From positions 14,570,001 to 14,634,000 of the forward strand of contig NC_086101.1 in NCBI RefSeq assembly GCF_963921235.1: a DNA stretch of 64,000 bases. Direction: 5' to 3'. This DNA comes from Mobula hypostoma (lineage: Eukaryota). Below are positions 19,191-46,423 of this stretch, in pieces (positions within the stretch are counted from its first letter, which is position 1; each line of letters opens with the position of its first letter). The notes under the pieces are model-generated. The model made no database searches. It saw only the letters and a list, made by a program, of their open reading frames with translations, and was not told the DNA's origin. The translations under genes and the position numbers were made by a program.

Positions 19191-19233
19191 ATGCTGAGGG
19201 AGGAGGTCGTTTGGGCATTGCTGTTCTTGTCTG
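19191..19233 (+). CDS. Gene 1 leader exon (signal peptide)
   Basis: ACC-ATG context; MLREEVVWALLFLS+G; phase-1 donor GTAGGT at 19234; 43 nt. Confidence 0.8.
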
Positions 19234-19275
19234 GTAGGTAATATACAGACACATACGGCCACACGTAGACACACA

Positions 19276-19317
<42 letters not shown>

Positions 19318-22300
19318 GAGGAAATTGGAAAAGGAATGGATTATTAAGTGATGCCATTGGATCAATTCTGACTAGCGATCTAAATTCAGATAGATAGCCT
19401 CTCCGCGCATCTTTCTACTCCTTTTAGTGGTTATCTGTCCATTACATACAAAAGTCAACATTTTGCAACGGAATAAGTCGGCATGGATCTAGTAATCTGA
19501 GATGAAAGAGGGAACGCAGACATTGGCTTCTTTCTGTGTGGTAAAGAAAATATATGCAGCTAGCAACCCTTCGGGCCCTGTACAATACGCTGTGCCAACA
19601 GCAATTACCCGTGTCGTTCTGTGTTGAAAATCGCTGTGCATCCAACGTTTGCACAAAGTCTCCTCGAGTTACTTGGCATTCCTACCGGAATGTACTAATG
19701 ACGAGAAAATCGCACATCCTGACTCATCCAGTTCCGTTCGCAAGCGACAGCACTGGAGTCAGTTCAGTCAATTAATTGGAGAAAAATCTCTCGCTGTGAT
19801 CAAGGTCTTTCATGAGCAACTGCTTGAACTCTATTTACATAAACTTATTGCCACATATCTTTCCCTGCAGTTTGAAATCCTGGCCGAATGCGTTGATTAG
19901 AAAGGATGCACTTAGAAAGAAGCCTGTTCAGAGCCGCTAGTTCCATTCTCCCACTTCACCTGTTCTTCTACACAAGCCCCCCCAGCTCTCTCTGAAACTA
20001 TTGCTGTCCGACTAAACTAAGATTAATTTATAGTGAATAGTTAGCCCTCTGGAACGCCTTTGGGATGTGGGAAGAAGTCGGCACGGCTACAGGGAGAACG
20101 TACGAACTTCGCACGGACGGTCACGATCGAACCCGCAAATCGAACCCGCGTCGCTGTTCGCTGTGTGAGGCAATAGCTCTCTTAAATGCGTCTCTGTCGC
20201 CTTTTGGCACCGATGACTCAATAGTCAATAAATATCTCGGTTTAAGAAGGAGAAATATGAGTTAATCATGACAAAAATTCAATCCAGCGGCTGCGAAACA
20301 ATGGAGAGCGCCGAATCAGTCAGTCAAAGTAGAGGCATTATCACAGAGCCTTACCGCTCCTTCTGCGGACAGACCCGATCAGAACAAATGATGGAACATC
20401 CGCAGAATTTTTTTTTCATTCTAAAACAAAATCAATCTGGCCATTTTCCTTACATAATCAAGAGAACATCTGAATTTACTGCACCGAAAAACAGGATTAA
20501 CGCGGAGGAGTAACGACTGGTCGGCTTGGACATGAGAAACCGAGGGCCATGTGGCTCTCTGATTATGACGAAGGCGACTACTCAATCTTTCTTGCGCATT
20601 AGGCCACGAAAAGAGCCATTTCTCCAACCTCTCGCTGTCCCTATCCTAGTCGCTAATATAGAAACCTTCACAAAGCTGTGGCTGTCTGTCTCTTCAACGT
20701 TTTTTTTAGGCAGTAAGTTCCAAGCACCTACACGATTGGGTTGAAAAATTAATTCTCGAGCGGTTAATGTCTTGCAGTGTTGGCTTCTTTGCCAATGGAA
20801 GTAGGTCGTGAATCTCAATTAACCTTTCACATACGGGCATCCGCTCGATCCACTTTCACCGTCCCTCTGAGCGTAAATCCACGCTCCCATCCAGAGATGA
20901 AAGCCGAATTAAAGATAAAGGGCATTGGATTCACTCAGCACGTTTGTAGCCAAACATAGAGCATAGAACATAGAACAGCAGAGCACAGGAATAGGCCACT
21001 CGACCCACAATGTTGCTCCGGGCCGGCTGAAAAACAAATCAAACACTCATCCCTCGTACCTACACTATACCTATTTCCATCCATGTGCCTATTCAAATAT
21101 CTCTCAAAAGCAGTTAATGTATTTGCCTCTACCATCCCACCAGACAGCGCATACCAGGCATCCACAGCTCTCTGAATAAAAACTTGCCCTTCACATCCTT
21201 TTCAACCTCCCCCCTCTCGCCTTCAATGTATGCTCTCTGGTATTAGACATTCAACCCTGGGAAACTAAAGGGATAGATAGGTTTATTGGCTGTTGTTCGT
21301 TTCTCTTCTATAGAAGATGGTCAAGCCATTCGTCGTCGGCATGCACTTTCCTTTTTACCGACCCTGTATCCGACTGACGACTGCCGCGCGAGTCAACCGG
21401 GCCTCTCCCCACCTCCTATCCAAAGCATATACCAGAAGCCTGCTCTCACAGAACCCCCAGCTGTGTCCAGGGCTCTCCCATCCGTCACACACTCTCTTTG
21501 ACTGCCTACTGTCAGGCAGAAGGTACTAGGGTATAAGTACAAGGACTGTCAGGCCTGGTGATCACTCCCCCCACCCCGCCGGCTGGGAGACTTCTGAACA
21601 CTCTGCTACCACCCAGCACACATTATCTATGAAAGCGCCAGGAACATTCTACTGTTGTATATTAGTGGTATGTCGTATATCCACGTTATGTCGAGATAAT
21701 ATTTTATTATCTGTTAATGCTATTGTGTTAATATCATCTAATATTAACATTGTATGTGATATACGTACTGTGTTTCGCACCATTCTCCCAGAGGAACGTT
21801 GTTTCATTTAGCTGTATACGTGTGTACAGTTGAATGACAATAAACTTGAACTTGAAATTGAAGTTAGGAAGCAGGGTAGAACTTCAAGCAGCCCACACGA
21901 AATGCTGGAGGAACTCAGCAGTCCAAGCAGCACTCTTGACTCCAGACTCTACACTTTCCTATAGATGCTGCCTTGCCTGCTGAGTTCCTCCAGCATTTTG
22001 TGTGTGTTGTTTGGATTCCAGCACCTGCAGTTTTTTTTTCCTGTTTGAGGGTAGAACTTCAAGCAGTTTATAGCAAAATATGCAATCATCAAATTGTGGC
22101 AGTGTCATTAAGGAGACTGTTTATTGTTACAGGAGTTGCTGGAGTCAGAGTAACAATCACACAAACGCCCCCGCGGGTCACTGTTACCGAAGGTGGATCG
22201 GTACAACTGAACTGTTCTTTCTGGTGGAACTTGGGGCAAGAAGAAAATAAACCACTTTATTCCATCGATTGGTACAAAGACGAGGAAAGTGCTTTACTTT

Positions 22301-24705
22301 GCAACAAAACCGCAGCATACAATGGCCGCCTTCTGAAAAGTTATACTGAGGGCTTTCTGTCGGAACGGGCGTCCATAACCATCCTTGATCTGAAACTAAA
22401 TGAAACCGGGAAATACTACTGCAAAATTCAGACTTTGAACGCTGAAACTGCTACTGGAACCGGGACAGAAATCACAGTGAAACGTAAGTCAGCATTACCT
22501 AACCTACCGGGCCAATCTTCCCCGCGCCCACCCCCCCCCCAGTTTCCCTTAAATTAAAACAAAAAACTCTAGAGGATTGACGGATGGGGTAGCTTTATGA
22601 TTCAATGGGAATTTACACCTTTTGCTGATGTGCAAAGCAATACCATAATTTGATAAAGAACAGACCATGGGCACGGTAAAAAAGAAAGTCTCAAAGTCTC
22701 TCGAAAGTCCCAACATCTCACGCAAGAAAAAAACTCTCCCTGCCGTGAACCTCCAGCGCCGCAAACTTGCCGATGCAGCACCCGACCACAGCCGACTCTT
22801 GAGTCCCGTCCGAAAACTTCGAGCCTCCGTCCAGCCTTCCGACACCGAGCACCATCTCTGTCGAGTGCTTCGACCCCGGCCCCGGCAACAGGCAATAGGC
22901 AAAGCCGAGGATTTGGGGCCTTCCCCTCCGGAGATTGTCGATCGCATAGTAGCAGCGGCAGTGAAGCAGGCATTTCAGAAGTTTCTCCAGATGTTCCTCC
23001 GTGCCTCTCACGTCTGTCTCCATCAAATCAGGATTGTGCAAGGCCCCCACTTAATAAATGCGATATCATTTCGGAGCGGCCGCGCGCGCTGCGTCGCGCC
23101 GCTATCTTCTCCTCTCCTCAAAACTTAAAATAATAATTACAGGCAAATGTAGCCTGACAGTAGCAGGCAGAATTTTAACCCGGGACTACGCCAAGTCCCA
23201 GACTGTGACACCCATCACGTTGCGGGATTTCATTTTCCACTACAGATAAGCGAGAAGAGATAACGTGGACGAGGCATAAAACGGACCCCTTCCGATCGTT
23301 TCCCCATATGTCACCGTCTACTACCTTGAGATTACTTTCTTGCAGGTATTCACTGTAAAACAAAGAATTACAATAGATTCAATGAAAAATCTACACGCAA
23401 AGTCTGACAAACAACCAATATGCAAAGGAAGAAAAACTATGCAAATACAACAACAACAACAACAATAAACAGCGTTACAGTAAATAAATAGCTAGGTAAA
23501 TATACGAACAAATAAGTAAACGGATGGACAGATAGACAAATAAAAATTGACAACATGAATAGAAGATTCCTTGTAAGTGAGTCCATAGGCTCTGAAATCA
23601 GTTCTCTGTTGATGTGAGTTCAGTTATCCACGCTGTTTCAGGAGCCCCATGATTGAGGGGTAATAACTGTTCCAGAACCTGCTAGCGTAGGAGCTAAGGC
23701 TCCTGTACCTCCTTCCCGATCGGAACAATGAGAAGAGAGCATGGTCTGGATAGTGGGGTCCTCGATGAAGGATCCTGATTTCTTGTGACAGCGCGGCTTG
23801 TAGATAAGTTCAATGTTGCGGAGGTCTTTTCCTGTGATGGATTGGGACATAGACTGCAGAGGATATCTCTTGCTAGAAAAACGTGACTCTCGTTGTAGCA
23901 GTCAATTCGATATGAGATGTGCATCTGAGGGGAATTTGGGGTCAAATGCGGGACGACATTGGGTACTGGTACAACGGTGTACTTATCCAGATAGGTGTAC
24001 TTACCCAGATTTGTAACAATGAATCACAAACTATTAGCAGTCTCTTCAGAGATTTAAGACCACATTGTGGAGAGTGAGCTTGATGAACTCGAGGTCTTGC
24101 CAGGCACTGATGATCAAAGAGCAAAGGACACAGTGACATTTGTAATCTAAAAATGAACTTACATTTACCGAGAAAACACTTCATCCTCTGTAGTGTAGCT
24201 ACTCACCATCTTGATCCTATGTGGTATGGCGACTGTTGCCAGATAACAATCAGAGCTGTAGAAGTAAACAACACATAAAGGGCAATATTTAAAAATAAAC
24301 ACTTGATGTTCCGTCCACCTTCTCGCCATTTCGAGGCTGCACTGAACCAACTAATTAGGTCTCTACAAACCATCCGAAGAAAGTATTTTTAGCAGTAAAA
24401 CATGAACTAATGTCTCTCCGTAGAGCATGAGGACTCCATACAGAAGAATGTCTATCTTCCTGAGCTTTTCGCCTTACCTGCTGTAGTCCTCACGTTGGCG
24501 CTTGTTGTGGTCATTTATATCCTGCGCCGCTGTCGATCTCCAGGTACCTGTTTGAAATCCAACTTCTTTGGTATGGGGAATTGGTTCACGGGATGTGATA
24601 TCCCTGAATCTGTTATTATCCACCTCTAATGTCCTGAGAAACGGTGGTGATTAAGAATCAGAATAAAACGCAGAATCAGGTATTATATCACTGGCATATT
24701 TTCTT

Positions 24706-24743
<38 letters not shown>

Positions 24744-27367
24744 AAACTAAAGGAACAGCCTCTTCCCCTTTGCCGTCAGATTTCTGAATGGACAGTTAAC
24801 TCATGAACACTACCTCACTGCTTTCTTGTACTATTTTTAAAAATTTAACTATATATAACTATATATACATTTATTGTAATTCAGTTTTTATTAATATGTA
24901 TTGCAATGTAATGCTGTCACATGACAACAAGTTTCACGACATATGCCGGTGATATCAAACCTGATTCCGGTTCTCGTACTGAAAACTTTGAGTGTGTGTA
25001 TTCAGGTTCCTGTACCCCCTCATTGATGGCAGCAATGAGAAGAGGTGATGGGGGTCCTTAATGATAAGTGCAGCTTTTCGAAGGATCAAGCGCATTGGTC
25101 AAGACCTAGACTAGATTTGCACCAAACATTTCCTTCAGTTTATAGCGTTAATAAGTTAACGCGTATTTACGACAATCCGGTAGACTCGCTGTTGTTTGGC
25201 TTTTTATTTCAGATCCCAGGTTGATATAATCTCATACGTTACTCACTTCTCTAAATAAATGATCCAGAATTCTAAACGCAAGTCTACTAACATAACCGTT
25301 ATGAAACGGTCTCCCCACAAACGAGTCTCTTTTCGTTAATGTCTAGATTAGAGACAAATTATTATTAGCATTGGAATGGATCTCATAATTGGACGAACGG
25401 CTAATTTTCTGCGATCATTATTTGTCGTGTAATGGTTTACAGGAATTTTTGTAACATGTATACTCCTTTATTAAACTTATGCCAGGGCAATAATGCGTCT
25501 TATATATAAAATATCTGTATATTCGTGGACCTGTTACTTATCTTCTGGTCTTTGCAAGGTCCAGGTAATAAAGTTTGCAAGGCGAGGTAAGAAAGCAAAA
25601 TTACAAGGTATTTTGCACTGACGTGGATATCTTGCTGCTGGCGTAGTGGTTAGCACAACGCTTTACAGTACTGGAGACACGGGTTCAATTCCCGTTGCTG
25701 CCTGTAAGGAGTTTGTACGTTCTTCCCATGACCGCGGGGGCTTCCTCCAGGTGCTCCTGTTTCCTTTCAGAGTGCAAAAGGTAGGTTAATTGGTCATTGT
25801 AAATTGTCCCTTGATTAGGCTAGCGAGAAGTCGGAAGCTGCTGGGCGGTGCGTCTCAGAAGGGCTTTTTTCGCATTGTGTCTCAAAGGATAAAAAAAAGA
25901 GAAACATTATCTAAATATGAGAAAAAAATAAACTAAGGTTTTACTTCATTTTATTTTTAGGTTATTTTACTGTTTTGGTCGTGTGATTTTATGTTTTTTT
26001 GGTCACACGGTAATACATTAAGATATAGTACAAAGAGTATCTGTAAGTTTGGAAATGTAGGAGAAATATCAGAATGAATAGACATTCTTCTCAAAATATT
26101 TATGAAATCCGTAGTGCCGCTGTTCTATCTGTGTGTGCTCTTTTCCCCGATTTGAAATAGCTAATCGTTTTTTTTTTAATGTATCATAGATAAAAGATCT
26201 GGAAGTCAAGTCGTCAGTAGGGTAGGTAGCATTTTTCCATTTCATTTATATTGATGTCCAGTGAAGGGTCTTCGGCATGAATTGTCAGCTATTTCTCTTG
26301 CCACAAATGCTACCTGACCTGTTGAGTTTTTTTTTTGTTTTCCCACACTTTCGGTTTTTAGTCCAACTGTCCAATACTATGTTGCGATTCCAGCTTTGAA
26401 TCAATGCGGAACAGCGTAGAGCTCAATCTTCGTTGAATGTTTGGAAGTCGCAAAATAATTAAGAGCCTGTTCTTTCTGCGGCAGCCTGGTTATTGAACTA
26501 TTGGGTGCTAAGCAGCGTAAGTAATTGAGTTGAAAATGACAGCAGTGCGTCATAACTCGCATTGCTCCAGGCTTAAGACTACAAAGTCATAAAAGTTAGA
26601 TGGAATGCAAGACAAACGCACAGAAAACAAATCTGTGGGCTGGGTGAATAACAAATGGATCTCTTTCGGGCAAATTTCAGTAGGAATATCAGCACTTATT
26701 GTCAATTGTTGTATTCGACCAGTCCTAAAGGGAATGAGTCATAGCAGTAGAATTAGACCATTCAGCTCATGAAGTCTGCTCTGATAGTCAATCACGACTA
26801 ATTTATTAGTCCCCTGATGCCCATTCTCCTACCTTCTCTAAATGATCTTTGACGTCCTTACTTTAAGACACCCGCTTTAAAAATGCCCAAAGTCTTGGCT
26901 TCCGCAGGTGGCCGTGACAATGAATTCCGCAAATTCGCCGACCTCTGAAGAAATTCCTCATTATTTCTTTTTAGAAAGGGCTTTCCGCGTTTCGAGCTTT
27001 AGAAAGCTCACTCGCGTAGAGGTATTTGCCATGGTGCTACTTCAAGCTTGTTGTGTTGTCTGTTTAATTTAAGGAGGTGGTCCAGTCGCAAGCTGTACTT
27101 CACACTCAGCTGAACAGCAGAAAGGTGGAACGCCTTCATCCACCGGATCAGATTGATCATAAATCAGTGATGCCTGGAATACGGCACGAAGAGCCAGGCG
27201 TGACGGGTTTGGCATCTCTCGCGAAAAGCGATGAAGGTGGGGTTGTATACTCCGCCCTTCGGTTTCAGGATCATTGTAAGCAACACCTTCCATCTGAGCC
27301 AGTGAAGACGCCAGGAACAAAAGAAGAGTGGATCGTGTATGCGGCTGTCAGTGTGCGGCAGTTGTAA
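19191..27367 (+). CDS. Gene 1: NKp30/NCR3-like single V-domain type I membrane receptor with two ITIMs (predicted inhibitory); join(19191-19233,22133-22483,24424-24543,25559-25586,26023-26042,26190-26221,27074-27367), 295 aa
   Basis: All junctions are GT-AG and phases are compatible (total 888 nt, open throughout). Signal peptide MLREEVVWALLFLSGVAG; V domain; TM LFALPAVVLTLALVVVIYIL; ITIMs VVYSAL and IVYAAV. The three micro-exons are less certain than the other four exons. Confidence 0.8.
19268..19313 (+). repeat. (AC)n microsatellite in gene 1 intron 1
   Basis: Seen directly. Confidence 0.95.
21892..22047. mobile_element. Fold-back Penelope-derived remnant with 19-bp TSD
   Basis: TSD AGGGTAGAACTTCAAGCAG at 21873-21891 and 22048-22066; internal inverted arms ATGCTGGAGGAACTCAGCAG / CTGCTGAGTTCCTCCAGCAT. 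Confidence 0.8.
22133..22483 (+). CDS. Gene 1 V-type Ig exon (VJ-joined, NKp30-like)
   Basis: ttacAG acceptor, GTAAGT donor, phase 1/1, 351 nt; VTITQTP...EGGSVQLNC...WYK...YNGRL...FL..RASITI.DL..NETGKYYC......GTGTEITVK. Confidence 0.95.
23330..24150 (-). mobile_element. Rex1/Babar-type LINE 3' fragment in gene 1 intron
   Basis: Minus strand IEDP....SLF......GRRYRSL...T.RF.NS-type peptide. Confidence 0.7.
24424..24543 (+). CDS. Gene 1 stalk plus transmembrane exon
   Basis: ctccgtAG acceptor, GTACCT donor, phase 1/1, 120 nt; QHEDSIQKNVYLPELFALPAVVLTLALVVVIYILRRCRSP. Confidence 0.88.
24706..24741 (+). repeat. (CTAT)n microsatellite
   Basis: Seen directly. Confidence 0.95.
25559..26221 (+). 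CDS. Gene 1 cytoplasmic micro-exons 25559-25586, 26023-26042 (or 26029-26042) and 26190-26221
   Basis: Donors GTAAGA, GTAAGT, GTAGGT; phases 1-2, 2-1, 1-0 link the TM exon to the phase-0 last exon; GPGNKVCKAR YSTKSIY KRSGSQVVSR. Confidence 0.55.
25635..25880 (+). mobile_element. tRNA-derived SINE (V-SINE-like)
   Basis: A box TGGCGTAGTGG (25639-25649), B box GGTTCAATTCC (25682-25692), core CTTCCTCCAGGTGCTCCTGTTTCC. Related minus-strand copies near 11410-11680, 20040-20200, 28790-29010, 59480-59680 and 60040-60240. Confidence 0.75.
27074..27367 (+). CDS. Gene 1 terminal exon with two ITIMs
   Basis: ORF 27077-27367; VVYSAL at 27242-27259 and IVYAAV at 27332-27349; TAA stop. Confidence 0.85.
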   Translation, partial: EVVQSQAVLHTQLNSRKVERLHPPDQIDHKSVMPGIRHEEPGVTGLASLAKSDEGGVVYSALRFQDHCKQHLPSEPVKTPGTKEEWIVYAAVSVRQL

Positions 27368-27639
27368 TGTATTAATTTCTGAACGCAAGCGGGGTTTCCA
27401 GTATAGGCACCGGTTTTGTCGGATTAGTTGCATAGTTGATATTCCAGGAGTTCATGGCAATTTGTCTCCATGCTTTTGCTATTACCGGTATCGTTAAACT
27501 TAGACTTTAATCACCACTCGAAATTAACATTTTTATGCATAATTATTTCATTACATGCGGAAGAAGAAGGGACATTAAAATGGTAAACTGAAAAGTTAAA
27601 TGTTCTGGTGCTCCGAAGTGAAATGAAGTAAAATAATTA

Positions 27640-27645
27640 AATAAA
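27640..27645 (+). terminator. Candidate polyadenylation signal of gene 1
   Basis: AATAAA about 270 nt after the stop codon. Confidence 0.4.
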
Positions 27646-30229
27646 CTGATGGATTCTGGTACTTAGAGATCATTTCAATTTTCAGGAGTCAATTTCTCAG
27701 AGGATCATCGATCAGGAAGCAGTTCTGTTTAATTCCATGAATGCATTCCTCGTTCAGAATTTACTCTGTAGCTAGTTAGACCATTCAAGATTCAGGAACA
27801 GCTTCTTCCCCTCTACCATTCGATTCATGAATGGTAATTGAACCCGTGAACACTACCACACTGCAGCTTTATTTCTTCTTTGCACTATTCATTTAATTTA
27901 ACTATATATATTTACGTAATTCACTTTTTCCCTAATATTATGTGTTGAATTTACTGCTACCTCAAAGACAACAAATTTCCCAACATGTGCTGACATATTA
28001 AACCTGATTCTGAAAATGAATTCGTCATGAACAACGCCCCATCTTCCATTTATGTACTTTGAACTCTTCGGTACACGATAGCAAATTCAATCATTTCAGG
28101 TAATTCGCTTTCTCTGCATGAGAACTAGCCAATTCTTATATATGTATAATTTTCTTGTTTATCTCCAATAACGAGTCTGATCTATTCTTTCTTTTTATCC
28201 TACCTCTCGACATGCATTCAACAGGTCAAATATTCCACTGTTTGATGCTGACATCTCTATCTGCCTTCATTCTCTTATCAACCAGTTGACCGTATTAACA
28301 GTTTATCTCCATGGCAATGCTAGTCTCACACTTTTAAACACTTTTCCTTCTCACTTTCTCTTCAAATTGACGAGATTTTTCTCTTTTTATCTTCTCCTGA
28401 CCTGGCGTTTCGACCTGAAATATTGATATCGTTTTCTTTCCCTAGTGATGCTGCCTGACCCACCAAGTATTTCTGCAATTTTCTGTTTTTGTTTCAATTT
28501 TCCATAAACTATCTTTTTAAATTTCTGTTTTACACGTCAAAACGTCTGTTCAGATAACCAGAATGATATGTCGATTCTTCAGTACTAGAATAAGACACTT
28601 ACTAAACCAGTCTATATTAATGCTTATGTTCACACGAGTCTTCTTGAAGCCCTCTTTCGACCTTACCCCCAGTAGAGCTAGATATGTTTTATCTAATATG
28701 TTTTCATGATGCATTTTGTTTTTTTTACCTCAAGTGTACAGTCACACTATTCCTCGTGCCCCGAATCGGGATCTCTATCCATCGCAGTGTTATTCACTTA
28801 AAGATATTTACCTGGATACATGTAGAAACAGGCCCTGCCGGCCCAAAGAGCCCGGGCCGCTCAGTTATACCTACGTGACCCGGAGGAACCCCGCCCCGTC
28901 ACAGGGAGAATGTACGAGCTCATTACAGAGAACGGCGGGAACTGAACGCGGGTGGCTGGCGCTGTAAATCGTTTACGGTAATCGCTAAGGTATCTACGCG
29001 CCTAATATCTTTTCCTCCACACATGCCCCTAGACGCGTTGAGTTCTTCCGGCAGATTGATTGTTGCGAAGGAAAAAATGGTTGTTCCTGTTCATCCTGTT
29101 TGCTCCCCTAAAGTTTATGTACCACAAATCAGTGAAGGCCTGGCACATCTCCCTAACGCGTTTTGCCTGTCATTATGGGCATATGAAAAACACTCACATA
29201 TTGATCTTTATTATTTTTATGACCTTTTATTAAGGCTAGAAATACGACTACATACTTTATAAATAACACTTTTTCTGTGGTAAATTGGGGTAAACTATCG
29301 CCGCAAACAATGAAGTGGAGAGCGAAGACGAGGCAGACTCGAGAGTTGAGCCGTGCGGGTGCGATGCAAATTGTTCAAAGGCTTCGCAGCGAAGGAAGAT
29401 AAGGGGCGTGAGAGAGGTGTACTAGGTGATAAGAGGCATAAATAAAACTACAAAACCAATGCATACAGCCAATTCCATTACGGATAAAGACAATCCCTCG
29501 CTGTTAAACTGCTCACCCCCTTCGCTCTCTGCTGCAGGCGGCATCACAGTCCGCACCAAGGGCGGTTGCTTCAGTTTCTCCGCCAATGAGCAACTCGCTG
29601 ATGGGGTAGGCCTGCAGTACTTTAGGTTGTTAATGTTCAGCGGGGTCTTGCGATCGTAAACAATATGTTTCAATCACAGCCTTGGTTGACCCTGTAGAAG
29701 CCGGGTCATCTTAGCGGAAACAAGAAATGCCAGAAAACACTATGTAAATCGGGGCGGCTAAAAGAAGATAGGAGGTTGCTCCAGCAGACAACGTGAAGGA
29801 GAATCTTTAGGGGTTCTACAGATATATTCAATATTTAATTACATTTATTATGAAATAATGTATAAATTATACAACCTTGAGATTTGTTTGCTCACAGGTA
29901 GCCACAAAACAAGAAACCCGAAAGAACCGAATTTAAAGAAATAAAAATAAAAAAAAGAAAAGACTACCACTCGATGCGCAAGAGAATGTTTTTTTTTTAA
30001 AAAAAGCACATGATACAATCAATTGAAACAAACAATAGTATTCTGAATCAACCATCAGTCCTCAGATCTGAACCCCGAAGCAGCATGGAGTAGGCCCAAA
30101 ACCTCGCTTATCGGTTTATCATATTAGCGGGTATTAAGCAAAGCAGCTGGGACAGTCTTCATAGCCTCAGCGCCATGGAGATGACCGTCGCGGAGAACGA
30201 GCGAAATCGGCTCTCGTCCTGACCGACAC

Positions 30230-30920
30230 CCTCTCTTTTCATATATCGAGAAGAAAAGGATAGCAAGAGACAAAATTGGCCCTCTGAAAGATCAGAGTTG
30301 TCGTATACGCGTGGAGCCGAAAGAGATGGGCAGATGTTAAACTGATTTTTTGCATCTCTATTTACTCGCGAGATGGACACAGAGTCTATAGATGTGAGGC
30401 AAAGTAGCAGCGAGATAATGGACCATATACATATTACAGAGGAGGAGATGTTTGTTGAGGCAAATTAGGGTGGAAAAATCCCCAGGGGCTGAAAATATGT
30501 TCCCTCAGTCCTGTGGGAGGCAGGGGCAGAAATTGCAGAGGCCCTAGCTGAGATATTTAAAACAACCTTATCCACGGGCGAGGTGTCAGAGGATTGGAGG
30601 ATATCTAATGTTGTCCTATTGTTTAAAAGGGGTTCTAATCCAGGGCATTATAGGCTGGTGAGCCTGACATCAGTTGTGGTAAATTATTGGAAGGTATTCT
30701 GAGGGGCCGGATATATAAGTATTTGGATAGGCAGGGACGGATTAGAGGTTTGTGCCTGGGAAGTCGTGTCTACTCTTAGGGAGTCTTTGGAGCAGCTTCC
30801 AGGAAAGTTGACAAAGGCAGTGGATGTTATCCACATGGATTTTAGCAAGGTGTTTCACAAGGTCGTGCATGGGAGGTTGCTGAAGAACACTAGTTGCTTG
30901 ACATTCAAGATGAGATCCTA
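30230..30920 (+). mobile_element. CR1 ORF2 fragment, degraded
   Basis: KRIARDKIGPLKDQ...VEPKEMG; EVSEDWRISNVVLLFKRG; MDFSKVFHKVVH. Confidence 0.8.
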
Positions 30921-31198
30921 AATTGGTGGGAATTTCCACTGATCACAAAATGGGTGAGATATTTAACACAGTGGCTTTACAATTATAATTTTACTGATAA
31001 GGCAAAACAAACTGGCAGCATCATAGAACAGCAGGTGATCTCTCCAGTGGGAATTTTAACCCAGTTCGCCCATGGGAAAGGAGATTTAAAGTAACAGCGA
31101 TACGTGGTTAGTTGGTCACAAATTTGACATATATAATTGCATAAGGAAGATTAAATGGTATGAATCAGAGGGGGATCGAAGAGGAATTTAATACTCAG

Positions 31199-35846: not shown

Positions 35847-36530
35847 TGTAGGGGTTTCTTCTTTTATGTTACTGCGTAGGCTAATTAAAATGGCTTCTTT
35901 GTTATGTTAGCTGCTGAGAAAGTTCTCTCGCTAGCAGCATGTTTGGATTATATTATTGATAATAGGACGAACGATCCAATTGTGATAGATGTTATTCTTT
36001 CTAGTGTGTCAGTAAGCCATTGTGATGCGCGGGTTTCTGGGGGAGAAGGCGCGATGGGGACAGAGAGAGCGGACGGGATGCTGTGAGCGGGCCGACGGGG
36101 CGGACCCGAGCCGGAGTCCGAGGTCCAGAGTCTTCGGCGAGGAGAGGAGAGGGAGACAGACACGTGTGGAGCGTCTGACCACCGTGGTTGGTCCCAGGCG
36201 GCGGATCGAGGTGGTCAGAGGGGATCGAATGGGGGAGAGAGGATCGTTACTAGAGCTCCAACTGTTTGTGCACGAAGAGATTACACTTTGCCAAGTTTGG
36301 CTCCTTTTATTTTCCTTTTATATTTTATCTCTGTTAATCATATAGTTCCAGTAATATCTATAAATTGTAATCAATTAATCGTATTTGGTATTTTCTCTGT
36401 TATTTGGCGGGGTGGGGTACAATCATACAGCATCCACACAAACAATTACTGTACCCAGTTTGGCGGGGCCGAGGGCTGCTTTCCATAGGCAGCGAGTTGA
36501 GCGAGCCCGAGGCTTACCAGGGCGGCTACA
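35847..36530. mobile_element. Solo LTR (684 bp)
   Basis: TGTAG...CTACA inverted termini; 4-bp TSD TACA (35843-35846, 36531-36534). Confidence 0.75.
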
Positions 36531-37079
36531 TACAGAAATCAGTGGGTACAGGGTACGAGTCATCCGTCAGATGCTACATATATCTGCAAAATCAGATACT
36601 TGAACCACCGTGTATATTACATTATATGGTGTAATTAATGCGGATACCTAAGATTTTACACATTTGATCCCGTAGTTAATGTGGATCACTACAGGTCCTA
36701 AAGAGAGAAATTACGCCTAACTAACCGCTAAGATTGTCCAATTGCAATGACAGCAAAGTCTCAGCTAAACCACGAACGTAGCAATACTTCACAACAAATT
36801 ATATATCTGTAGATTAATGCATGGTGGGTTCTTTAGGGAAACTGTGTATTTTCAGTTTGCACCTCCAGAACTGGCGATATAGAGTGATCATCAATGCCAC
36901 AAATAAACCAGAATGTGGCAGATAATTATTGGTGGCACTAACCTAAAGGGAATTTATTTTTATCTAATACGTCGGCAAGACATTGTGTAAGCGTTAAGTG
37001 CTAGTACCGAAAAAGTGGACCAGACATCTGTACCTTTGCCACCTAACTGTATCTGACCCATGCGTTATTTATTTTTTCT

Positions 37080-37460
37080 TTCACATTCTTTCTTTCTCTC
37101 TTCTTTTTCTCCCTCTGTCCCTCTGACTATACCCCTTACCCATCCTCTGGGTTCACCCCCCCTTTTCTTTCTCCCCGGACCTCCTGTCCCATGATCCTCT
37201 CATATCCCCTTTGCCTGTCCGGCTCTTGGCTCCATCCCTCCCCCTTCTGTCTTCTCCTATCATTTTGGATCTCCCCCTCCACCTCCCACTTTCAAATCTC
37301 TTACTAACTCTTCCTTCAGTTAGTCCTGACGAGGGGTCTCGGCCTGAAACGTCGACTGTACCTCTTCCTAGAGATGCTGCCTGGCCTGCTGCGTTCACCA
37401 GCAACTTTGATGTGTATTGCTTGAATTTCCAGCATCTGCAGAATTCCTGTTGTTTGACTG
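37080..37460 (+). mobile_element. Penelope-like 3' UTR/pLTR with minimal hammerhead motif
   Basis: Pyrimidine-rich tract, then agtcCTGACGAGGGGTCTCGGCCTGAAACGTCgact (37322-37357), then the GATGCTGCCTGGCCTGCTG...CCAGCA terminus shared with other copies. Confidence 0.8.
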
Positions 37461-39265
37461 TATCTTTCTTTGATTTAATGATCAAATAAATTGGAAAATC
37501 TTGTAAGTCGCCCAGACTGAAGTCAATACATTCACTTCACTCTTCTGGGAAATGATAACTGGTTTAGCATTTGCATATTATTTCACTAGAAATACATTCG
37601 ACTCCTACCTCACATTTTCTTCCTTCAATAGCTTAAAGCTTTCGCGTTGTATAAACTCTCTCACATCGCTTTGGGCCGTGGTACGCAAGATTAGGGACCA
37701 GTATCAGATGATGACATCAGGTCGGGTCATGTAACCTAAATCTGACGGCTCATTCGTCGTATATATTCTGGGGTTCTCCGTACGGCAGAGAGATCTGTTC
37801 AGGATCAGTAGCAAGTCCGGTTGTTTCAACTCTTACTAGCGAATTCTGAGCCGATTCGTTTCTGTTCAAGTACTGTATGCGGTACCACCGTTTGAAAATT
37901 TGTTCTTTTGGCAGTCTTTGGTGCCCAACTGTGAGAACAGAGAATTCATCCAGAATAGCGCTTCCTCGGTAGTGAAGCTGGAACTGCTGGGATGCCGGCA
38001 TGGATTATCTTGCCGTCTGCGTGCAAAGTCTATTGTGAGACTGGAATCTGTTGCCTTCTAAACAAATAACAAAAATGCGCTTCCCTTCTAACCCTCGGGA
38101 TAATATTCAAGTTGACAAATCCGCATAATCCCTAGCGGAAGTGGAACAATTTATTGTGACATTAGGTAATTTCTAAGGTAGGGACATGTTCGGCACAGCT
38201 TTGTGGGCAGAAGGGCCTGCATTATGCTGTAGGTTTTCTGTGTTCTCTGGTTCTATTATTTTTCTCCATTTTTCTATCGGCATTCTCCTTTGAAAATAAA
38301 CTATGAATGTCCATTTTCCTCAACATTGTCCAACTGATTAATATGCTGGTTAGAACATAAAACAGTACAGTATAGTACAGCCCTTCGGCCCACAATGTTG
38401 TGCTGACTTCAAGATCAACCTAACACTTTCCTGCCGCATTGCCCTCCGTTCTTCATTCATCTGTGTGCTCATCTAAGCGTGTCTAAAATGTCCCTAATAT
38501 ATCCGCCTCTACCACCACTCCTGGCAGGCGCTGAACGCACTTACCATTCTCTGTGTGAAGAAAAAAATACATTTGACATAACTCTTACATGTCCTCTAAT
38601 CACCTTAAAATTGCGTCCTCTTGTCTGAACTATTTCCACCCTCGCTGTTCTCTCAATCCATGTCTCTTATCATCCTATACACCTCAATCAATTCACTTCT
38701 CACCCTCCATCTCTCCAATATTAGGTTTCCTAGCAACGCAAACATGAATTAAGTGATCAATAATTGTTTTCAGAAGGAGCTGTCGGCTATATTCCACATG
38801 CAGGTAGCCTTCTTTGCAGTTACTGACGTGTGTTTTCTTTACAGAGAATGGTGCCTTCCCGGCTATACCTGCAGGTGTCTTAATAATTAAGGTACTGAAT
38901 GTTTCCGCGGCTAAACGGCGTTTCTTCAGGTAGGACGTTTGTCTCAGTGGAAATATGGGTAAGTGAATTGACAGTATAGGGGTTGAATTCTGACTAAACT
39001 GCTGGGATATTTGAATTTAAATATCATTTCTCTTTAAGCTGGCATCCCCTGTGGTCACTATGAAACTGCTGAATTGTGAACAACTACCTCGCTCGCTAAT
39101 GTTCTCAGGGAAAGTAAATTTCTCTTCCTCGTTTAATCCGGCCTGTCCGAGACTTCAAATACACGGCTTCCTAATTGCCTGGGTGCAGAATATAATATAA
39201 ATAACTCTTTGGATACCGGATACTGTTTATTGTCGTATCTATACGTGGAGGAATATCGTGAAAGA

Positions 39266-39308
39266 ATGAATCTTGCCCTGCATATCTGGACGCTGATGCC
39301 TCTCTTAA
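39266..39308 (+). CDS. Gene 2 leader exon
   Basis: 43 nt, phase-1 donor GTAAGC at 39309; same length as the gene 1 leader, with Trp at position 8 in both. Confidence 0.75.
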
Positions 39309-42300
39309 GTAAGCCCTTTCTTTTTTTTCAATACTTTACTAGAGTATAGTCCGTCCAAATTATTACATACAAACACACACAGAAATATCGGAGCAGGAGT
39401 AGTCTGTTTGGCCTCTCATTTCGATATCATCAAAGCTCATCTGCCCTGGGCCTCAAATCACTTCTGAGCCAGTGTCCCGCTGCGCTCAATTGCCGATCTT
39501 TCAAAACTGAACCCACTTTCTCTCTAAATACGTCCAGTGTTAGAGCTCCGAGATCATCCCAGGTAGCCACGACCAGAAACTCATTATCCTCTGCGAGAGG
39601 AAATTTCCACGCATGTCAATTCCACAGTCCCACTTCGACCCGACACCCCTCTACCCCTAACGATCTTGTAACCAAATCCCATCTTTCGAAAATCGACAAC
39701 AAGCGGAAATACCTCAGTATTTACACTTTCATGCCCATTTAAGATCTGAAATGTGGCAATCCATTTACACTTTCACTTAAACACGAACGAATGCAGGTCT
39801 AGCTCTTCTAGCCCTTCTTGGGAGGTCAACCCCCTATTCCTGGGAATTACACTCGTTATGTCTCCAATGCTAACAGATCTTCGAACAAAATAAGAGGACT
39901 AAAACTACACAATCACCCCAGATGCAGTTCTCACGAGAACCCTGTATAAATTTGAATCAATACTCTGTTTTGAAATCTAACCTTATTGCAATAGAGGTAA
40001 ATACACCATTTATAATTTATACACTAAGTAACTACCCGATTAGGGACTGGAATGCACTGGGTGTATATTCTTAGTCTTCTGCTGCTGTAGCCCATAGATT
40101 TCAAGGTTCGATAGTTATGCATTCAGAGATGTTTTCTGCTCACCAGTATTGAGTTACTGTCGCCTTTCTGTCAGCTTGAACCACTCTGGCCGTTTCCATC
40201 TGAACGCCCTCATTACCAATACAATCACAAATAAGAGGAAATCTGCAGATGCTGGAAAGCCAAGCAATACATACAAAATGCTGGAGGAACTCAGCAGGCA
40301 AGCCAGTGAGCTGCAATTCTGTGTATGGAAACGTCTTGTTTATGAGGGCAACACACACAAAGTGCTGGAGGAACTCAGCAGGCCAGGCAGCATCTATGGA
40401 AAAGAGTACTGTCGACGTTTCGGCCCGCGAACCTTCATCAGGACTGGAAAAAAGTTGAAGACCTCTGCTTTCTTACTTTGACTCCTCAACTTTTTTCCAG
40501 TCCTGATGAAGGGTCTCGGCCCGAAACGTCGACTGTACTCATTTCCATAGATGCTGCCTGGCCTACTGAGTTCCTCCAGTACTTTGTGTGTGTTGCCCTC
40601 ATTAACAAGACGTTTCCACACACAGAATTGCAGCTCACTGGACTTTCTCTCTAAACTGTTGCCCGCAAAAATCCCAGACTTTTCTGAGACTGTTAAATCA
40701 ATCCGTGTGGCACCAATAATCATTCTACGGTCAAAGTCACTTAGATCACATTTATTCCATAGTTTGATGGTTGGTCTGAACAACTGAACCGCTTGCTGAT
40801 ATCTGCACAGAGTTGCTCTCGCACGATTAGATATTTGCATTAACGAGCAGGTGTACATAATAAAGTGGCCACTGAGTTCATATTTATAAATTACAGCGAC
40901 AACTGCCAGAAAAATAGATGTATTTCAATCACCACCTTCCATTGAGACCGTCGAAGGAGAGACAGTCAACCTTCTGTGCACGTATAACACAACGTATAAG
41001 GGCATCGGGGCGTTTATGTGGTACAAAGCTGCAATGAATGGAATTGAAGAAGCCGAAGTAACTAACACATCCACAAGATACTCCGGTAGAATATTGAAAG
41101 TGGATAGAGCTTCTTTTCTGTTGGACCGGAACGCTTCTATCACGATCACAAACGTTAGACGTGATGACTCAGGGACATATATTTGCCAGGTGGAAATGGT
41201 ACTCGTGGAGAAAGTCAGAGGACCAGGAACAATATTAACAGTTAAATGTAAGTCCGTGTGAAAATGTGAATAGTCCATAAGACCCTAAATAGACCGTAGG
41301 GCACAGGAGCAGAATTAGGCCACTCGGCTCATCGGGTCTGCTTCGTCATTTCATCATGGCTGATCTATTATCCCGCTCAACCCCATTCTCCTGCCGTCTC
41401 TTCGGAACTTTTGATATCCTGGCTAAGCAACAACCTGCCTAGCCCCTTCAATATTTGATAGATTACAACTAGATCCACCCTCTCAGTCGTCTAAACCCCA
41501 GCGAGTACAGGTCCAGAGCCATCAAACGCTCGTCATAAGTTAACTGTTTCATTCCTTCTCCAAATCCATCACATATTTTCTTAAATAAGGGGCCAAAATT
41601 GCTGACAATACTCCAAAAGTACAGCCTGGCCAATGCTTTATAAAGCCTCAGCATTACAACCTGGTTTTTATATTCTAGTCCTTCTGAAATGAATGCCAAC
41701 AGTGCACTTGCCTTCCTTATCATTGGCTCAACTTGCAAGATAGCTTTTAGGGAAATCCCAAGACCCTTTGCATCTCTGATTTTTGAATTTTACCCATGTT
41801 TAGAAAATATTCTACGCCTCTATTCCTTCTACCAAAGTGAACGATCACTTCCCTACACAATATTCCATCTGCCATTTCTTTGTTCATTCTCTCAATCTGT
41901 CCAAGTCCTTCTGCAGACTCCCTGCTCCCTCAACAATACCTTCCCGACCACCTGTCTTCGTATCGTCTCCAAACTTGGCCAGAAAACCATTATTTATGTC
42001 ATACAAACCATTGGACTATAATGTGTAAAGAAGCGGTGGCAAGCCCATCTACAGTAGGCCACCTTGTTCTGATTCTTTCCCTCCTTCCAGATGGTCAGAT
42101 GAGTATCCATTCTAGAATCTTTCTTGCACTGTCCTTCGCTCTTATGCTGTCAAGTAGCCTCATGTGTGGCACCTTGTCAATTCCGAAACCTGCCAATTCC
42201 TCAAACAATTCCAACAGATTTGTCAATAACCTCTAACAACTTCACTACCTTCATACATTTCAGCTTCTCAAGCACCTTCTCCTTAGTAATAAGAATTACA

Positions 42301-45300
42301 CTCACTTCTGCCCCTTGACACCCTTGAATTTCCAGCATACTGCTACTCTCTCCCGTTGTTATGAATGCTGCAAAATATTTATTAAGATCGTCCATCATTC
42401 CTTTGTTCCCTATTCTTTCTCCTCCAGACTCATTTTCCAACGGTCCAATATTCACTCTCTCCTCTCTTTTACATTTTATATAAATGAAAAAATAACTTCT
42501 GGTATCCTCGTTGATAATCCCTTTGGGACTTTTATAGCTGGATTTAAAAACATCATTTTTATAGCAGAAGCAGGCAGTACCTTTGGAAAAGGCACACTCG
42601 ACTTTTCGGGCCGAAACCCTTCGGCAAGACTGGAAAAAATAGCCATTTTAATTCCACTCCCTATTCCCATTCCGATATGTCCATCCATGGCCTCCTCCAC
42701 TGTCGTGATAAGGCAACACTTAGGTTAGAGGAACAGCACCTTATATTCCATTTGAGTAGCCTCCAACCTGATGGCATGAACATCGATTTCTCAAACTTCT
42801 GGTGACGCCTCCTCACCCCCTTTACCATTTCCCATCCTCCTTCTCTTTTTCTCATGTTATCTCCTTGCCCGCCCATCACCTTCCTCTGGTACTCCGCCTC
42901 CGCCCCCCGTCCACTTTTTTCTATCTTCCATGCCTTTCACCAATCAACTTTCTAGCTATTTGCTTCATCCCCCCCCCCCACCATCTCAAAGTTTCACTTA
43001 ACGCCTAGTGTTTCTCTCTCTCCTCCCCCCGCCTTTCAAATCTACTCCTCAGCCTTCTTTTCCAATCCTGCCGACGGGTCTCGACCGGAAACGTCGAATG
43101 TGCTTTTTTTCCCCCATAGATGCTGCCTGGCCCGCTGAGTTCCTCCTTCATTTTGTGTGTGTTGCTGAGATTTTCAGCATCTGAAGATTTTCTCTTGTTT
43201 ATTACAGCAGAAGTATTGGTTTTTAAAAGTTTATCAATCCTCTAACTTGCTACTAGAATTTTTCTGTATTATATACTCTCTCTTTTGCTATGACTTCCCT
43301 TGTAACCCAAGTTGTCTCATTCTCCTTTTAGAATACTTCATCTTTGGGATGTATATATCCTGTGCCTATCGAACTGCTGCCAGAAACGCCAGCCATTGCT
43401 GATCAGCCGTCATCCCTGCTAGTGTTCCTTTCCAATCCTCTTTGGCCAGCTCCTTTTTCAAGCGTCTGAAATTCCCTTTATCCACTGTAACACTGACACA
43501 CCCGACTTTATCTTCTCCCTCTCAAACTGCAAGGCGAATTCTAACCCTTGAACACTTACTCATAAAGGCTCTTTTACTTTAAGCTCTAATTAACTTTCGT
43601 TCATTACAGTACAACCAATCGAGAATTGCCTTTACCTTCGTGGGCTCAACCAGAAGCTGCTATTAAAAGCGATCTCGTAGGCATTCTGCAAATTCTCTCT
43701 CATAAGGTCCAGTACCTACCCAATTTTCCCAAACTCCCTGCATTTTGAAATCCCTGTTGACTTTCGAAACATTGACCTTATTACATGCATGTCCTATTTC
43801 CCGTTGAAATATATATTCCACATTCAGCTATTGTTCGGGGGTCTGTATATAACTGCCACCTAGGTGTTTTTACCCTTGCAGTTTCTTAACTCTACCCACA
43901 AAAATTCTACATCTTCCTCGATCCTATGTCATCTCTTTCTAAGGATTTGATTTCATTTATTACTAGCAGAGCCACCTCAACCCCTTTGGCTATTTGCTTG
44001 TCCTTTTGATACAATTTGTATCCTTGGATGTTAAGCTCCCAACTATGATCTTGTACAGTCATTGCTCATAAATGCCCAAGAGCATCATACCTCCCAATCT
44101 CTAATCACGCTACAGGATCATCTACCTTATTTCGCGTACTGTGTGCATTCAAATATGACACCTTCAGTCCTGCGTTCATCGCCATTTTCTATGATGCCCC
44201 CATGTTAGACTTCACCTCATCCCTCTGACTGCAGGTCCTCCTACCATATGCGCAGTGTTCATACTCACAGCGTCACTGCACGTTGCATCCTGCCAATTTA
44301 CCTTCACCTTAGAATATTTGAATAAGTGAGAGATAGATACATGTGCGGTTATATAACTGGATGGACCGGTACATAGGTATGTATGTATTTATGTATGTAT
44401 GTATGTATGTATGTAGGTAGGTAGATAAACAGTCAGATAGACAGGCAGGCAGACAGACAGATAGACAGAGGCAGATAGATTGTTAAACACATTCACAGAT
44501 AAGTAGATGGAGACAGACACACAGACAGACGCTCAGACCGACAGACTGAGAAACTGACTGACAGACAAATAGAGGAATGGGTCGTAAGGTAGATATAAAC
44601 AGAGACAGAGGGAATGGAGTATGTAATAGTGAGAGAAAATAAAGACAGACGGACAGACGGGGATGGAAATAGGAAAACTGGCACATAATGTGTCCTTAGG
44701 ATCATAAGACAATAGAATTGTTGAGAATGTTTGATATGGAGTAACAGGCTGCCTAAGTTTATGCTGGAAGGATAACTAACTTAGTCAGTCAGCCCTCCAG
44801 CACGAGGTTGGTAGCCCTGCATGATACAGCTCTTCAAGTGCACATCCGCAACTAGGGTTTCAGATTACGCCACACCTCTAGAAAGCAGGTTCCATACCCC
44901 TATCAAATGTCTTGTTTCCTCCTTAAAAATTCATACTGGAAGGCTGCTGGTCAAATTGAACAGAACAAATTAATCTATGTGAATGCATGTTGCAAACTAG
45001 CGTGAATTTGTAAAAGGATTTGTGAAAGGTTACCATGGATTTAACTCAGTGAATCTAATGCAAGACGAACCAGCCAGGATGTGAAATAAACAATACAGCA
45101 AGTGCTCTCCAATTTTTACACTTGCGTTGGATGGAAATCCACCTTTTGTTTCTGTATTCAATATTCCGCCAGCAGTTTGCAGAGAAAATGAAGGAAAAAA
45201 AAACTAGCATTGATTCTTTAAAGTTCAAATTTCAAGGTAAAATGATTATCAAAGTATACCTGAGATTCATTTTCTTGCAGGCATTCACATCATATAAAAA

Positions 45301-46423
45301 GAAACGCAACAGATTCAATGAAGCACTGCAGTGCACACAACAGAGCCCGACAAACAACCAATGTGCAAAAGACAAAACAAATAAACAAATGAATAAATAA
45401 ATAAATAAAATAGTGTAAATATTGAGAGCACGAATTGTAGAGCCCTTGAAAGTGAATGCACAGGCTGTGGAATCAGTTTAGGTTGAGATGAGTGAATTTA
45501 TCAACTCTGGTTCTAGAACCTGATGGTTGAAGGGTAATAACTGTTCCTGAACCTGGTGGTGTGGGACTCAAGGCTCCTGTACCTCCTTCCTGATGGCAGC
45601 AGTGAGAAGAGAGCATGGCCTGGATAGTGGGGCTCCTTGATGGTAGATGCTGCTTTCCTGTGACAGCGCTCCAGGTAGATGTGCTAAATAGTGAGGTGGC
45701 TTTAATTGTGGTGAACTTAATTCTGAACATTAAGGCAGAAGCCATCATCCTTTCATGTTTAAAAACAGATGATGGGAAGTTTTTGTAAACCGAAGAGATT
45801 CTGCGAAATGATGAAATCCAGCGTAGCACATACAAAATGCTGGAGGAACTCGGCAGGAGAGGCAGCATCAATGGAAAAGAATTAACAGTCGACTGTTGGA
45901 GCGGAGACTTCATCAGGATGAAGAACTTACGAGGAAGGGTCTCTGTCCGAAATGTCGACTGTTTATTCCCCTCCATTGATGCTGCCCGACCAGATGAGAT
46001 CCTCCAGCCTTTTGTATGTTGCAATGATAGTGTTTAAGTTGGTGAAACGCAACAATGTTCATTGTTGAAGTAGGTCCAATAAAATAATACAAATAATAAG
46101 CTGTTATCCTGCTTTGTAATATGAATACCGTAGTGAAATCTACAGCAACGTCAATTGCTAGGTTATATATGCCCGTATAGGGAAATAATTCAAGGACTCT
46201 ACAACTCACGTTCTCAATATTAACCCACAAGATTAATTGAAAATAAATCGAATTCAGGAATGTAATTTTGAAATCTATTGCTTCGATTTCAACAGATGTG
46301 ACCACGCTGGAAAGGAGCAGCAGGAATTGGCGATCGCAGTTCATCGTAATTGGGGTGAAGGCTGCAGCGTTTATAGTGACCATCATTTTAACCATTGCCC
46401 TTATGCACTTTTGGGGAACTTAA
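39266..46423 (+). CDS. NCR3: Gene 2: NKp30/NCR3-like activating receptor; join(39266-39308,40897-41247,46296-46423), 173 aa
   Basis: Leader MNLALHIWTLMPLLTTTA; V domain matches the recalled human NKp30 pattern (Q.P.I.T.EG...L.C..N, EV.N.T..GR, FL.D..A.I.I..VR..D..Y.C.VE...G.GT.L.V); TM FIVIGVKAAAFIVTIILTIALMHFW with Lys; stop 2 residues after the TM. GT-AG junctions, phases compatible. The symbol is family-level; orthology is not established. Confidence 0.82.
40216..40594. mobile_element. Penelope-derived inverted pLTR insertion with 10-bp TSD
   Basis: TSD GCCCTCATTA at 40206-40215 and 40595-40604; 156-bp inverted arms at 40303-40458 and 40486-40641. Confidence 0.8.
40498..40535 (+). ncRNA. 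Minimal type I hammerhead ribozyme motif (Penelope-type)
   Basis: Stem I CAGTC/GACTG; core CTGATGA; stem II GGG-TCTCGG-CCC after one extra A; GAAA; loopless palindromic stem III ACGT; GTC cleavage triplet. Activity untested. Confidence 0.75.
40897..41247 (+). CDS. NCR3: Gene 2 V-type Ig exon (NKp30-like)
   Basis: ttacAG acceptor, GTAAGT donor, 351 nt; IDVFQSPPSIETVEGETVNLLCTYNTT...WYK...EVTNTSTRYSGRI...DDSGTYICQVEM...GPGTILTVK. Confidence 0.93.
41280..44270 (-). mobile_element. Degraded CR1 LINE pieces in gene 2 intron 2, interrupted by a Penelope fragment
   Basis: IGPLENESG...DLNKYFA; MLRLYKALARL; QLTYDERLMALDLYSL.FRRLRG. Confidence 0.8.
42560..43200 (+). mobile_element. Penelope-like element 3' end: GIY-YIG endonuclease C-terminus, 3' UTR and pLTR, with inverted pLTR at the 5' side
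   Basis: 42641-42805 reads SHFNSTPYSHSDMSIHGLLHCRDKATLRLEEQHLIFHLSSLQPDGMNIDFSNFW*; degenerate hammerhead motifs near 42600-42635 (-) and 43065-43100 (+). Confidence 0.8.
44380..44680 (+). repeat. Compound (GTAT)n/(GACA)n simple repeat
   Basis: Seen directly. Confidence 0.85.
45430..45760 (-). mobile_element. Rex1/Babar-type LINE 3' fragment
   Basis: Minus strand KEPHYPGHALFSLLPSGRRYRSL..HTTRFRNSYYP-type peptide. Confidence 0.75.
46296..46423 (+). CDS. Gene 2 stalk plus TM plus stop exon, with transmembrane lysine
   Basis: ttcaacAG acceptor, phase 1; Lys codon at 46358-46360; TAA at 46421-46423. Confidence 0.85.

Follow-up and report, generated by a model that had tools for sequence, protein, structure and literature searches.

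Two probable NKp30 (NCR3)-family genes with opposite signalling ends in the genome of Mobula hypostoma

NKp30-type genes and paired receptors

Human NKp30 (NCR3) is a single-copy, activating natural killer (NK) receptor with an arginine rather than a lysine in its transmembrane (TM) segment, and its VJ-type variable (V) domain is relevant to the question of how antigen receptors arose. To our knowledge, no other NK receptor can be traced across the jawed vertebrates. Here we analyse two neighbouring genes, gene 1 and gene 2, in a 64,000-nucleotide (nt) stretch of Mobula hypostoma DNA (contig NC_086101.1, positions 14,570,001 to 14,634,000; hereafter the window, in which position 1 is the first letter), which an earlier note had proposed to be a paired NKp30-like receptor system built in this lineage. 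We conclude, with a probability of roughly 85%, that they are two intact and transcribed elasmobranch members of the NKp30 (NCR3) family, gene 1 being of inhibitory type and gene 2 of activating type, and that they are unmatched neighbours.

Multigene NKp30-like families in non-mammals have been reported before. In Xenopus, the NKp30 and XMIV genes are said to be expanded, reportedly in work of Ohta and colleagues in 2006 and of Flajnik and colleagues in 2012, and the latter group reportedly found that the number of NKp30 genes co-varies with B7H6. Amphibian relatives of the present genes include forms whose tails carry immunoreceptor tyrosine-based inhibitory motifs (ITIMs; Ambystoma P0054 and Lissotriton P0095, the P-numbers being our labels for database proteins) and forms with a TM arginine (Lissotriton P0117 and Rhinoderma P0145). 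Unlike the two genes described here, they form separate amphibian clades in our maximum-likelihood (ML) tree of 45 V domains, and are therefore independent expansions.

In the nurse shark, eight divergent, MHC-linked NCR3 subtypes have reportedly been described by Kinlein and colleagues in 2021; the accessions of the eight are MT914154-MT914161. Complementary DNAs (cDNAs) of the nurse shark NCR3 family are already deposited in GenBank, and we take QTT61904.1 (P0017; 'natural cytotoxicity triggering receptor 3 [Ginglymostoma cirratum]') and its sibling records to be tied to that 2021 family; a profile search, with 8000 candidates scored, returned no other nurse shark NCR3 deposits. ITIM-tailed relatives and relatives with a lysine or arginine in the TM (K/R-TM) are annotated, many of them as 'NCR3-like', in Carcharodon, Heterodontus, Scyliorhinus, Pristis, Mobula and Hypanus, and also in Ambystoma, Lissotriton, Rhinoderma and Acipenser. 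NKp30 as a lone activating gene, the starting point of the earlier note, applies to mammals only: NCR3-like genes of the ITIM and K/R-TM types are annotated in sharks and rays, in salamanders, and in one frog and one sturgeon. The concept of multigene NCR3 families with both signalling ends is thus already known, being visible in public annotations and in the nurse shark cDNAs.

The other systems with which the locus can be compared are the paired receptors KIR2DL/2DS, Ly49, LILRB/A, SIRPalpha/beta and the teleost NITR. Like the present locus, they consist of clustered ITIM-bearing genes and tailless genes with a TM lysine, whereas their ectodomains are nearly identical, which is not the case here.

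Family membership, exon structure and RNA of the two genes

The best single-domain matches by sequence, profile and predicted fold support the assignment of both genes to the NKp30/NCR3 family. The top single-domain match in the PDB was human NKp30, at 39.9 bits for the V domain of gene 1 and 48.6 bits for that of gene 2; the one chain that stands above it for gene 2, an antibody construct of four domains, reaches no more than 20 bits in any one domain. Profiles A1 and A2, built from ten relatives each, gave scores to NKp30 of 62.9 bits for gene 1 and 81.1 bits for gene 2, with immunoglobulin/T-cell receptor V domains and SIRP as the next single-domain families at about 50-54 bits, and pIgR and diabody chains outrank NKp30 by profile only as sums over several domains. 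The AlphaFold2 models of the V domains had predicted local distance difference test (pLDDT) values of 83.7 (gene 1) and 91.3 (gene 2), and for both of them Foldseek ranks 1-4 were human NKp30 (3NOI, 6YJP and 3PV6). All three rankings are consistent with the NKp30-like identity that the earlier note had given to the two genes.

Both V domains end in a J-like GxGTx[LVI]xV stretch, of which GxGT is invariant in both family alignments. As in human NKp30, a single VJ-type V domain lies on one exon in each gene, and gene 2 also shares the basic TM residue and the short tail, although the Foldseek identity to the human protein is about 30%. In contrast, the TM of gene 1 is uncharged and its two-ITIM tail has no counterpart in human NKp30, a combination that resembles other non-mammalian family members.

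Gene 1 could alternatively belong to another ITIM-bearing V-set family (TIGIT, PD-1, CD300 or SIRP). The automatic NCBI names of the relatives are indeed mixed ('TIGIT-like' in Mobula, 'SIRP-like' or 'pIgR-like' in some sharks), and in the profile search with gene 2, SIRP ranks second among the single-domain families. However, NKp30 leads the next single-domain match of gene 1 by 6.5 bits by sequence and by about 10 bits by profile, gene 1 lacks the C1 domains found in SIRP, and its ITIM tail is common to P0003 and P0138, which NCBI names NCR3-like. TIGIT, PD-1, CD28 and CD300 are absent from the best 60 PDB sequence matches for the gene 1 sequence and profile, and none of TIGIT, CD28 and CD300 is among the matches listed in the sequence, profile or fold searches; PD-1 turns up once, at Foldseek rank 45 for gene 1, where the entry is a PD-1/antibody complex. 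The grouping of the gene 1 V domain with PD-1 or CD300, which the earlier note had named as an outcome that would speak against its proposal, was therefore not found in the PDB, profile or Foldseek rankings, and we regard membership in another such family as scarcely probable.

Both genes lie on the plus strand, with 11.9 kb from the stop of gene 1 to the start of gene 2, and each has a leader exon of 43 nt and a V exon of 351 nt. All eight exons are open frames with canonical AG/GT splice borders, and these coordinates and borders confirm the layout given in the earlier note, namely same-strand genes about 12 kb apart with matching leader and V exons. The V exons score as Pfam V-set domains with E values of 1e-11 (gene 1) and 6.5e-16 (gene 2).

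The product of gene 1 is predicted to have 279 residues, encoded by five exons; its TM is uncharged, and its tail of 114 residues carries the two ITIMs. The leader exon (19191-19233, plus strand) spans 43 nt from the ATG, encodes MLREEVVWALLFLS-, has a GTAGGT donor and aligns from Met1 with the N-terminus of Pristis P0003. The V exon (22133-22483, plus strand) is in phase 1 at both ends and carries the J-like motif GTGTEITVK. Exon 3 (24424-24543, plus strand), located by a hydropathy scan, has AG/GT borders and phase 1; it encodes the stalk and the uncharged TM LFALPAVVLTLALVVVIYIL, followed by RRCRSP, and shows 87% identity to residues 110-148 of Hypanus sabinus P0001. The cytoplasmic tail lies on exon 5 (27074-27367, plus strand, with the stop at 27365-27367), which contains the ITIMs VVYSAL (Y241) and IVYAAV (Y271), their tyrosines being 30 residues apart.

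The ITIM-bearing open frame (27068-27364) is out of phase with the TM exon, and the tail exon is in frame because a 32-nt micro-exon (26190-26221, plus strand, AG/GT borders) shifts phase 1 to phase 0. This micro-exon encodes DKRSGSQVVSR, identical at 11/11 residues to residues 149-159 of P0001. The two ITIMs that the earlier note had assigned to gene 1 are thus present and conserved, but the direct joining of TM and ITIM exons fails and the micro-exon is needed. Two other solutions were tried and rejected: a direct splice from 24543, whether to 27074 or to 27077, loses the frame and reaches an ITIM-less stop after about 27 codons, and an alternative TM donor at 24570 leaves the phase unchanged, hence its rejection in favour of the micro-exon.

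The closest database protein to the V domain of gene 1 is P0001, the product of Hypanus sabinus LOC132394822, with 81% identity in the V domain, 73% in the tail and 80% over 255 residues of the full product. We regard LOC132394822 as the orthologue of gene 1, with which it shares the TM, the identical micro-exon peptide and the two ITIMs; its XP model differs in having no leader and is annotated as 'uncharacterized protein', with the NKp30 likeness unstated. The Pristis, Mobula and Heterodontus tails likewise resemble that of gene 1, and both ITIMs are conserved in Hypanus, Pristis and Mobula. A (CA)n microsatellite (19262-19316) occupies part of intron 1 of gene 1, about 30 nt past the leader donor.

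The product of gene 2 is predicted to have 173 residues on three exons, with K153 inside a TM at residues 147-170 and three residues after the TM. Its leader exon (39266-39308, plus strand, 43 nt) encodes MNLALHIWTLMPLL-, the sole signal-peptide-like sequence among the 43-nt ATG..GT candidates, and its alignment to the leader of nurse shark NCR3 begins at Met1 (pattern MN..LW....LLTT.A.K). The V exon (40897-41247, plus strand, 351 nt) ends in phase 1 and carries the J-like motif GPGTILTVK. Exon 3 (46296-46423, plus strand), in phase with the V exon and the only exon resembling a lysine-bearing TM (K-TM) in the window, encodes the stalk and TM FIVIGVKAAAFIVTIILTIALMHF, then WGT, with the stop at 46421-46423.

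The gene 2 V exon would join the TM exon from 41247 to 46296, a junction placed by homology. The K-TM exon is homologous to those of sawshark P0159, nurse shark P0017, Mobula P0007 and Hypanus P0008, and its TM carries the conserved G-[VL]-K-x-A-x-F motif. Gene 2 matches nurse shark QTT61904.1 along its whole length from Met1 onwards, with 49% identity across 171 aligned positions, and the two share the leader pattern, a single VJ-type V domain, an RS-rich stalk, the TM motif and the lack of a tail. At that identity, and between a shark and a batoid, the nurse shark protein is a lineage-level relative rather than a demonstrated one-to-one orthologue. A word-based protein search with the gene 2 V domain gave zero matches, and its relatives surfaced in an exhaustive HMMER search.

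In some proteins related to the V domain of gene 2, two to five NKp30-type V domains follow one another in a tandem array (sawshark P0009/P0159, Mobula P0010, Heterodontus P0011 and Hemitrygon P0174), and NCBI names these 'pIgR-like' or 'turtle-like'. An open frame at 47076-47414 (plus strand), located 650 nt beyond the stop of gene 2, encodes a convincing TM and stop-transfer stretch, FLFAVVNAAAGVVLIYIVGMLCWRRKVWK; it was rejected as a family exon because it resembles none of the family members significantly. A relic exon or a chance frame could account for it, and a part of it overlaps a dispersed repeat.

The RNA runs available are small and stored as contigs, and they indicate that both genes are transcribed; run X1 contains contigs from both. 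For gene 1, an X1 contig lies on the V exon (22281-22474, 0 mismatches), and a 295-nt X1 contig covers 27073-27336 of the tail exon region plus 31 further letters upstream. As these letters lie off the adjacent intron, we read the contig as spliced. The X1 depth of 0.6 in the micro-exon bin equals 31 x 3.4 / 177 and fits the 31 unplaced letters, so that the tail exon is very probably spliced to the micro-exon, the joint itself being absent among the joints listed. For gene 2, an X1 contig on the V exon (40897-41003, 0 mismatches) starts exactly at the acceptor and has 49 letters upstream of it, which leaves room for the 43-nt leader and some untranslated region, and a contig of run X4 lies on 41038-41172, also with 0 mismatches.

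Alternatively, one or both genes could be non-functional relics or annotation mirages, the RNA arising from carried-over genomic DNA or from read-through. In favour of this, exon depth is as low as 3-7, long interspersed nuclear elements (LINEs) and a dispersed short repeat crowd the region, gene 2 has no word-based protein match, and neither protein is annotated as a product of this genome in the protein database. Against this, the eight exons are all open with canonical splice sites, the contigs start exactly at the exon borders 40897 and 27073/4, their upstream letters off the adjacent intron indicate spliced RNA, the full-length orthologues are strongly conserved, and the introns between the exons have zero RNA depth outside repeats. 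We therefore consider this explanation very improbable and retain the reading of two intact, transcribed genes.

Relationship between the two neighbours

The V domains of gene 1 and gene 2 show 32% identity, and the ML tree places them in different clades. Gene 1 groups with its Hypanus orthologue (support 100/98) inside a batoid clade (100/96) that contains the ITIM forms Pristis P0003 and Mobula P0004 and P0006 as well as the K-TM forms Mobula P0002 and P0007 and Hypanus P0008. The shark Heterodontus P0138 is sister to this batoid clade (99/93), and the resulting group with gene 1 includes P0138 and the batoid P0002, P0003 and P0007, all four named 'NCR3-like'. The clade of gene 2 (96/94) contains sawshark domain 2 and the nurse shark NCR3 protein QTT61904.1, its V-domain identity to the nurse shark and sawshark relatives being 53-55%. 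The sisterhood of genes 1 and 2 was fixed as a constraint before the tree was seen, as the hypothesis of the earlier note; forcing the two genes together is 85 log-likelihood units worse, with a p value of 0.0001 in the approximately unbiased (AU) test. The split between the two genes predates the shark-ray divergence, because each lineage holds both ray and shark. As judged from sequence, genes 1 and 2 are opposite-polarity neighbours and not a matched pair, and since their sublineages separated before the shark-ray divergence, they most likely see different ligands.

A true paired unit would instead have shared or overlapping ligands, for example B7H6-like ones, and the two receptors would hold each other in check on shared cells, as KIR2DL/2DS or SIRPalpha/beta do. 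Several traits of paired receptors are found here. There is an ITIM member and a tailless member with a charged TM at one locus, on the same strand and with identical exon sizes; both V domains are NKp30-like; and one run, X1, holds RNA contigs of either gene. The opposite signalling ends pointed out in the earlier note, two ITIMs in gene 1 and a TM lysine in gene 2 followed by only WGT before the stop, are indeed present. The trait that fails is the near identity of the ectodomains. Gene 1 has a closer relative in Hypanus (81%), and gene 2 in nurse shark and sawshark, than either has in its neighbour, and the AU test rejects their sisterhood, whereas known matched pairs are about 90% identical.

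These matched pairs include one from the NCR3 family itself: over leader plus V, Mobula birostris P0002 (K-TM, 'NCR3-like') shows 90% identity to P0004 (ITIM). The two lie on the same 210-Mb contig and represent a genuine matched pair inside the gene 1 clade. A paired unit of genes 1 and 2 is thus unlikely. The suggestion that a paired system was built in this lineage is not supported, in view of the 32% identity, the separate clades and the AU rejection, and holds at most loosely; ITIM and K/R-TM relatives are widespread, and we prefer the reading of unmatched neighbours from old sublineages.

Among the 30 labelled rows of the tree, signalling type switches at least eight times. Opposite signalling modules are a family-wide property and have been swapped many times, and according to the tree signalling polarity often changes in the NCR3 family. 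A broader proposal is that the elasmobranch NCR3 family is the oldest working paired-receptor system, with this locus as a conserved inhibitory/activating unit having related ligands. We find this doubtful. If it were true, ancient sublineages of fixed polarity would have been kept side by side, inhibitory for gene 1 and activating for gene 2, the activating form of the gene 2 type would be conserved from rays to nurse shark and sawshark, and young matched pairs would arise repeatedly by swapping the K-TM exon for the ITIM-tail cassette. Such repeated swapping enters the proposal because of the number of switches on the tree and the 90% identity of the Mobula pair.

Predicted signalling and the surrounding window

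Once its ligand is bound, the gene 1 receptor would be phosphorylated on Y241 and Y271 by Src-family kinases. The spacing of the phosphorylated ITIMs would suit the tandem SH2 domains of SHP-1/SHP-2, whose recruitment may dampen signals from immunoreceptor tyrosine-based activation motifs (ITAMs). In gene 2, K153 is predicted to pair with a TM aspartate of an ITAM adaptor dimer and so to bring about activation; the receptor would signal only via this adaptor, for which CD3zeta, FcRgamma and DAP12 are candidates.

Some points weigh against the reading of two intact, transcribed genes of opposite type. Phosphatase recruitment, adaptor pairing, expressing cell type and ligands are deduced from motifs, and the TM lysine of gene 2 is the 7th of 24 residues, a position that does not identify the adaptor. 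The RNA contigs, besides coming from small runs, are of unknown tissue. No contig lies on the TM exon of gene 2, and three junctions, the joints among the gene 1 V exon, TM exon and micro-exon, are not seen directly in the RNA contigs; the RNA joints listed are mostly repeats, and neither gene's own junctions are among them. The RNA check of junctions proposed in the earlier note thus bore out the spliced tail exon and the acceptor of the gene 2 V exon, and left the gene 2 TM exon uncovered.

The exon-level models of both genes and the tree add to the picture of the balance between activation and inhibition in early vertebrates. The value of the analysis lies in the careful annotation, in the frame correction by the micro-exon and in the caution it suggests against naming neighbours a 'pair'.

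The two V exons, both on the plus strand, are all the matches in the window when either V domain is used as a tblastn query, and neither further V exons nor further K-TM exons were found in the 64 kb. No further host genes besides gene 1 and gene 2 were seen in the window, and a Rfam scan of it at the gathering threshold found no RNA families. The window is LINE-rich, with about 36-53% GC. LINE fragments lie on both flanks of the genes (892-4241, 13955-15385 and 48223-48744 on the minus strand; 51840-52460 and 55337-57934 on the plus strand) and encode endonuclease, reverse transcriptase and RNase H domains.

Six intronic segments (22631-23161, 23516-23692, 25640-25816, 42720-42906, 43094-43280 and 45525-45711) have summed RNA-contig depths in the thousands; with many matches at 95-99%, they are expressed repeat families rather than gene exons. 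Additionally, a dispersed short repeat with the core ATGCTGGAGGAACTCAGC has 10 copies at up to 2 mismatches, against 0 expected. They are located at 11964, 21902-21996, 40278-40379, 43134, 45837, 58957, 59196 and 62073. Among them, an inverted pair precedes the V exon of gene 1 by about 140-230 nt, and a tandem pair precedes that of gene 2 by about 520-620 nt.

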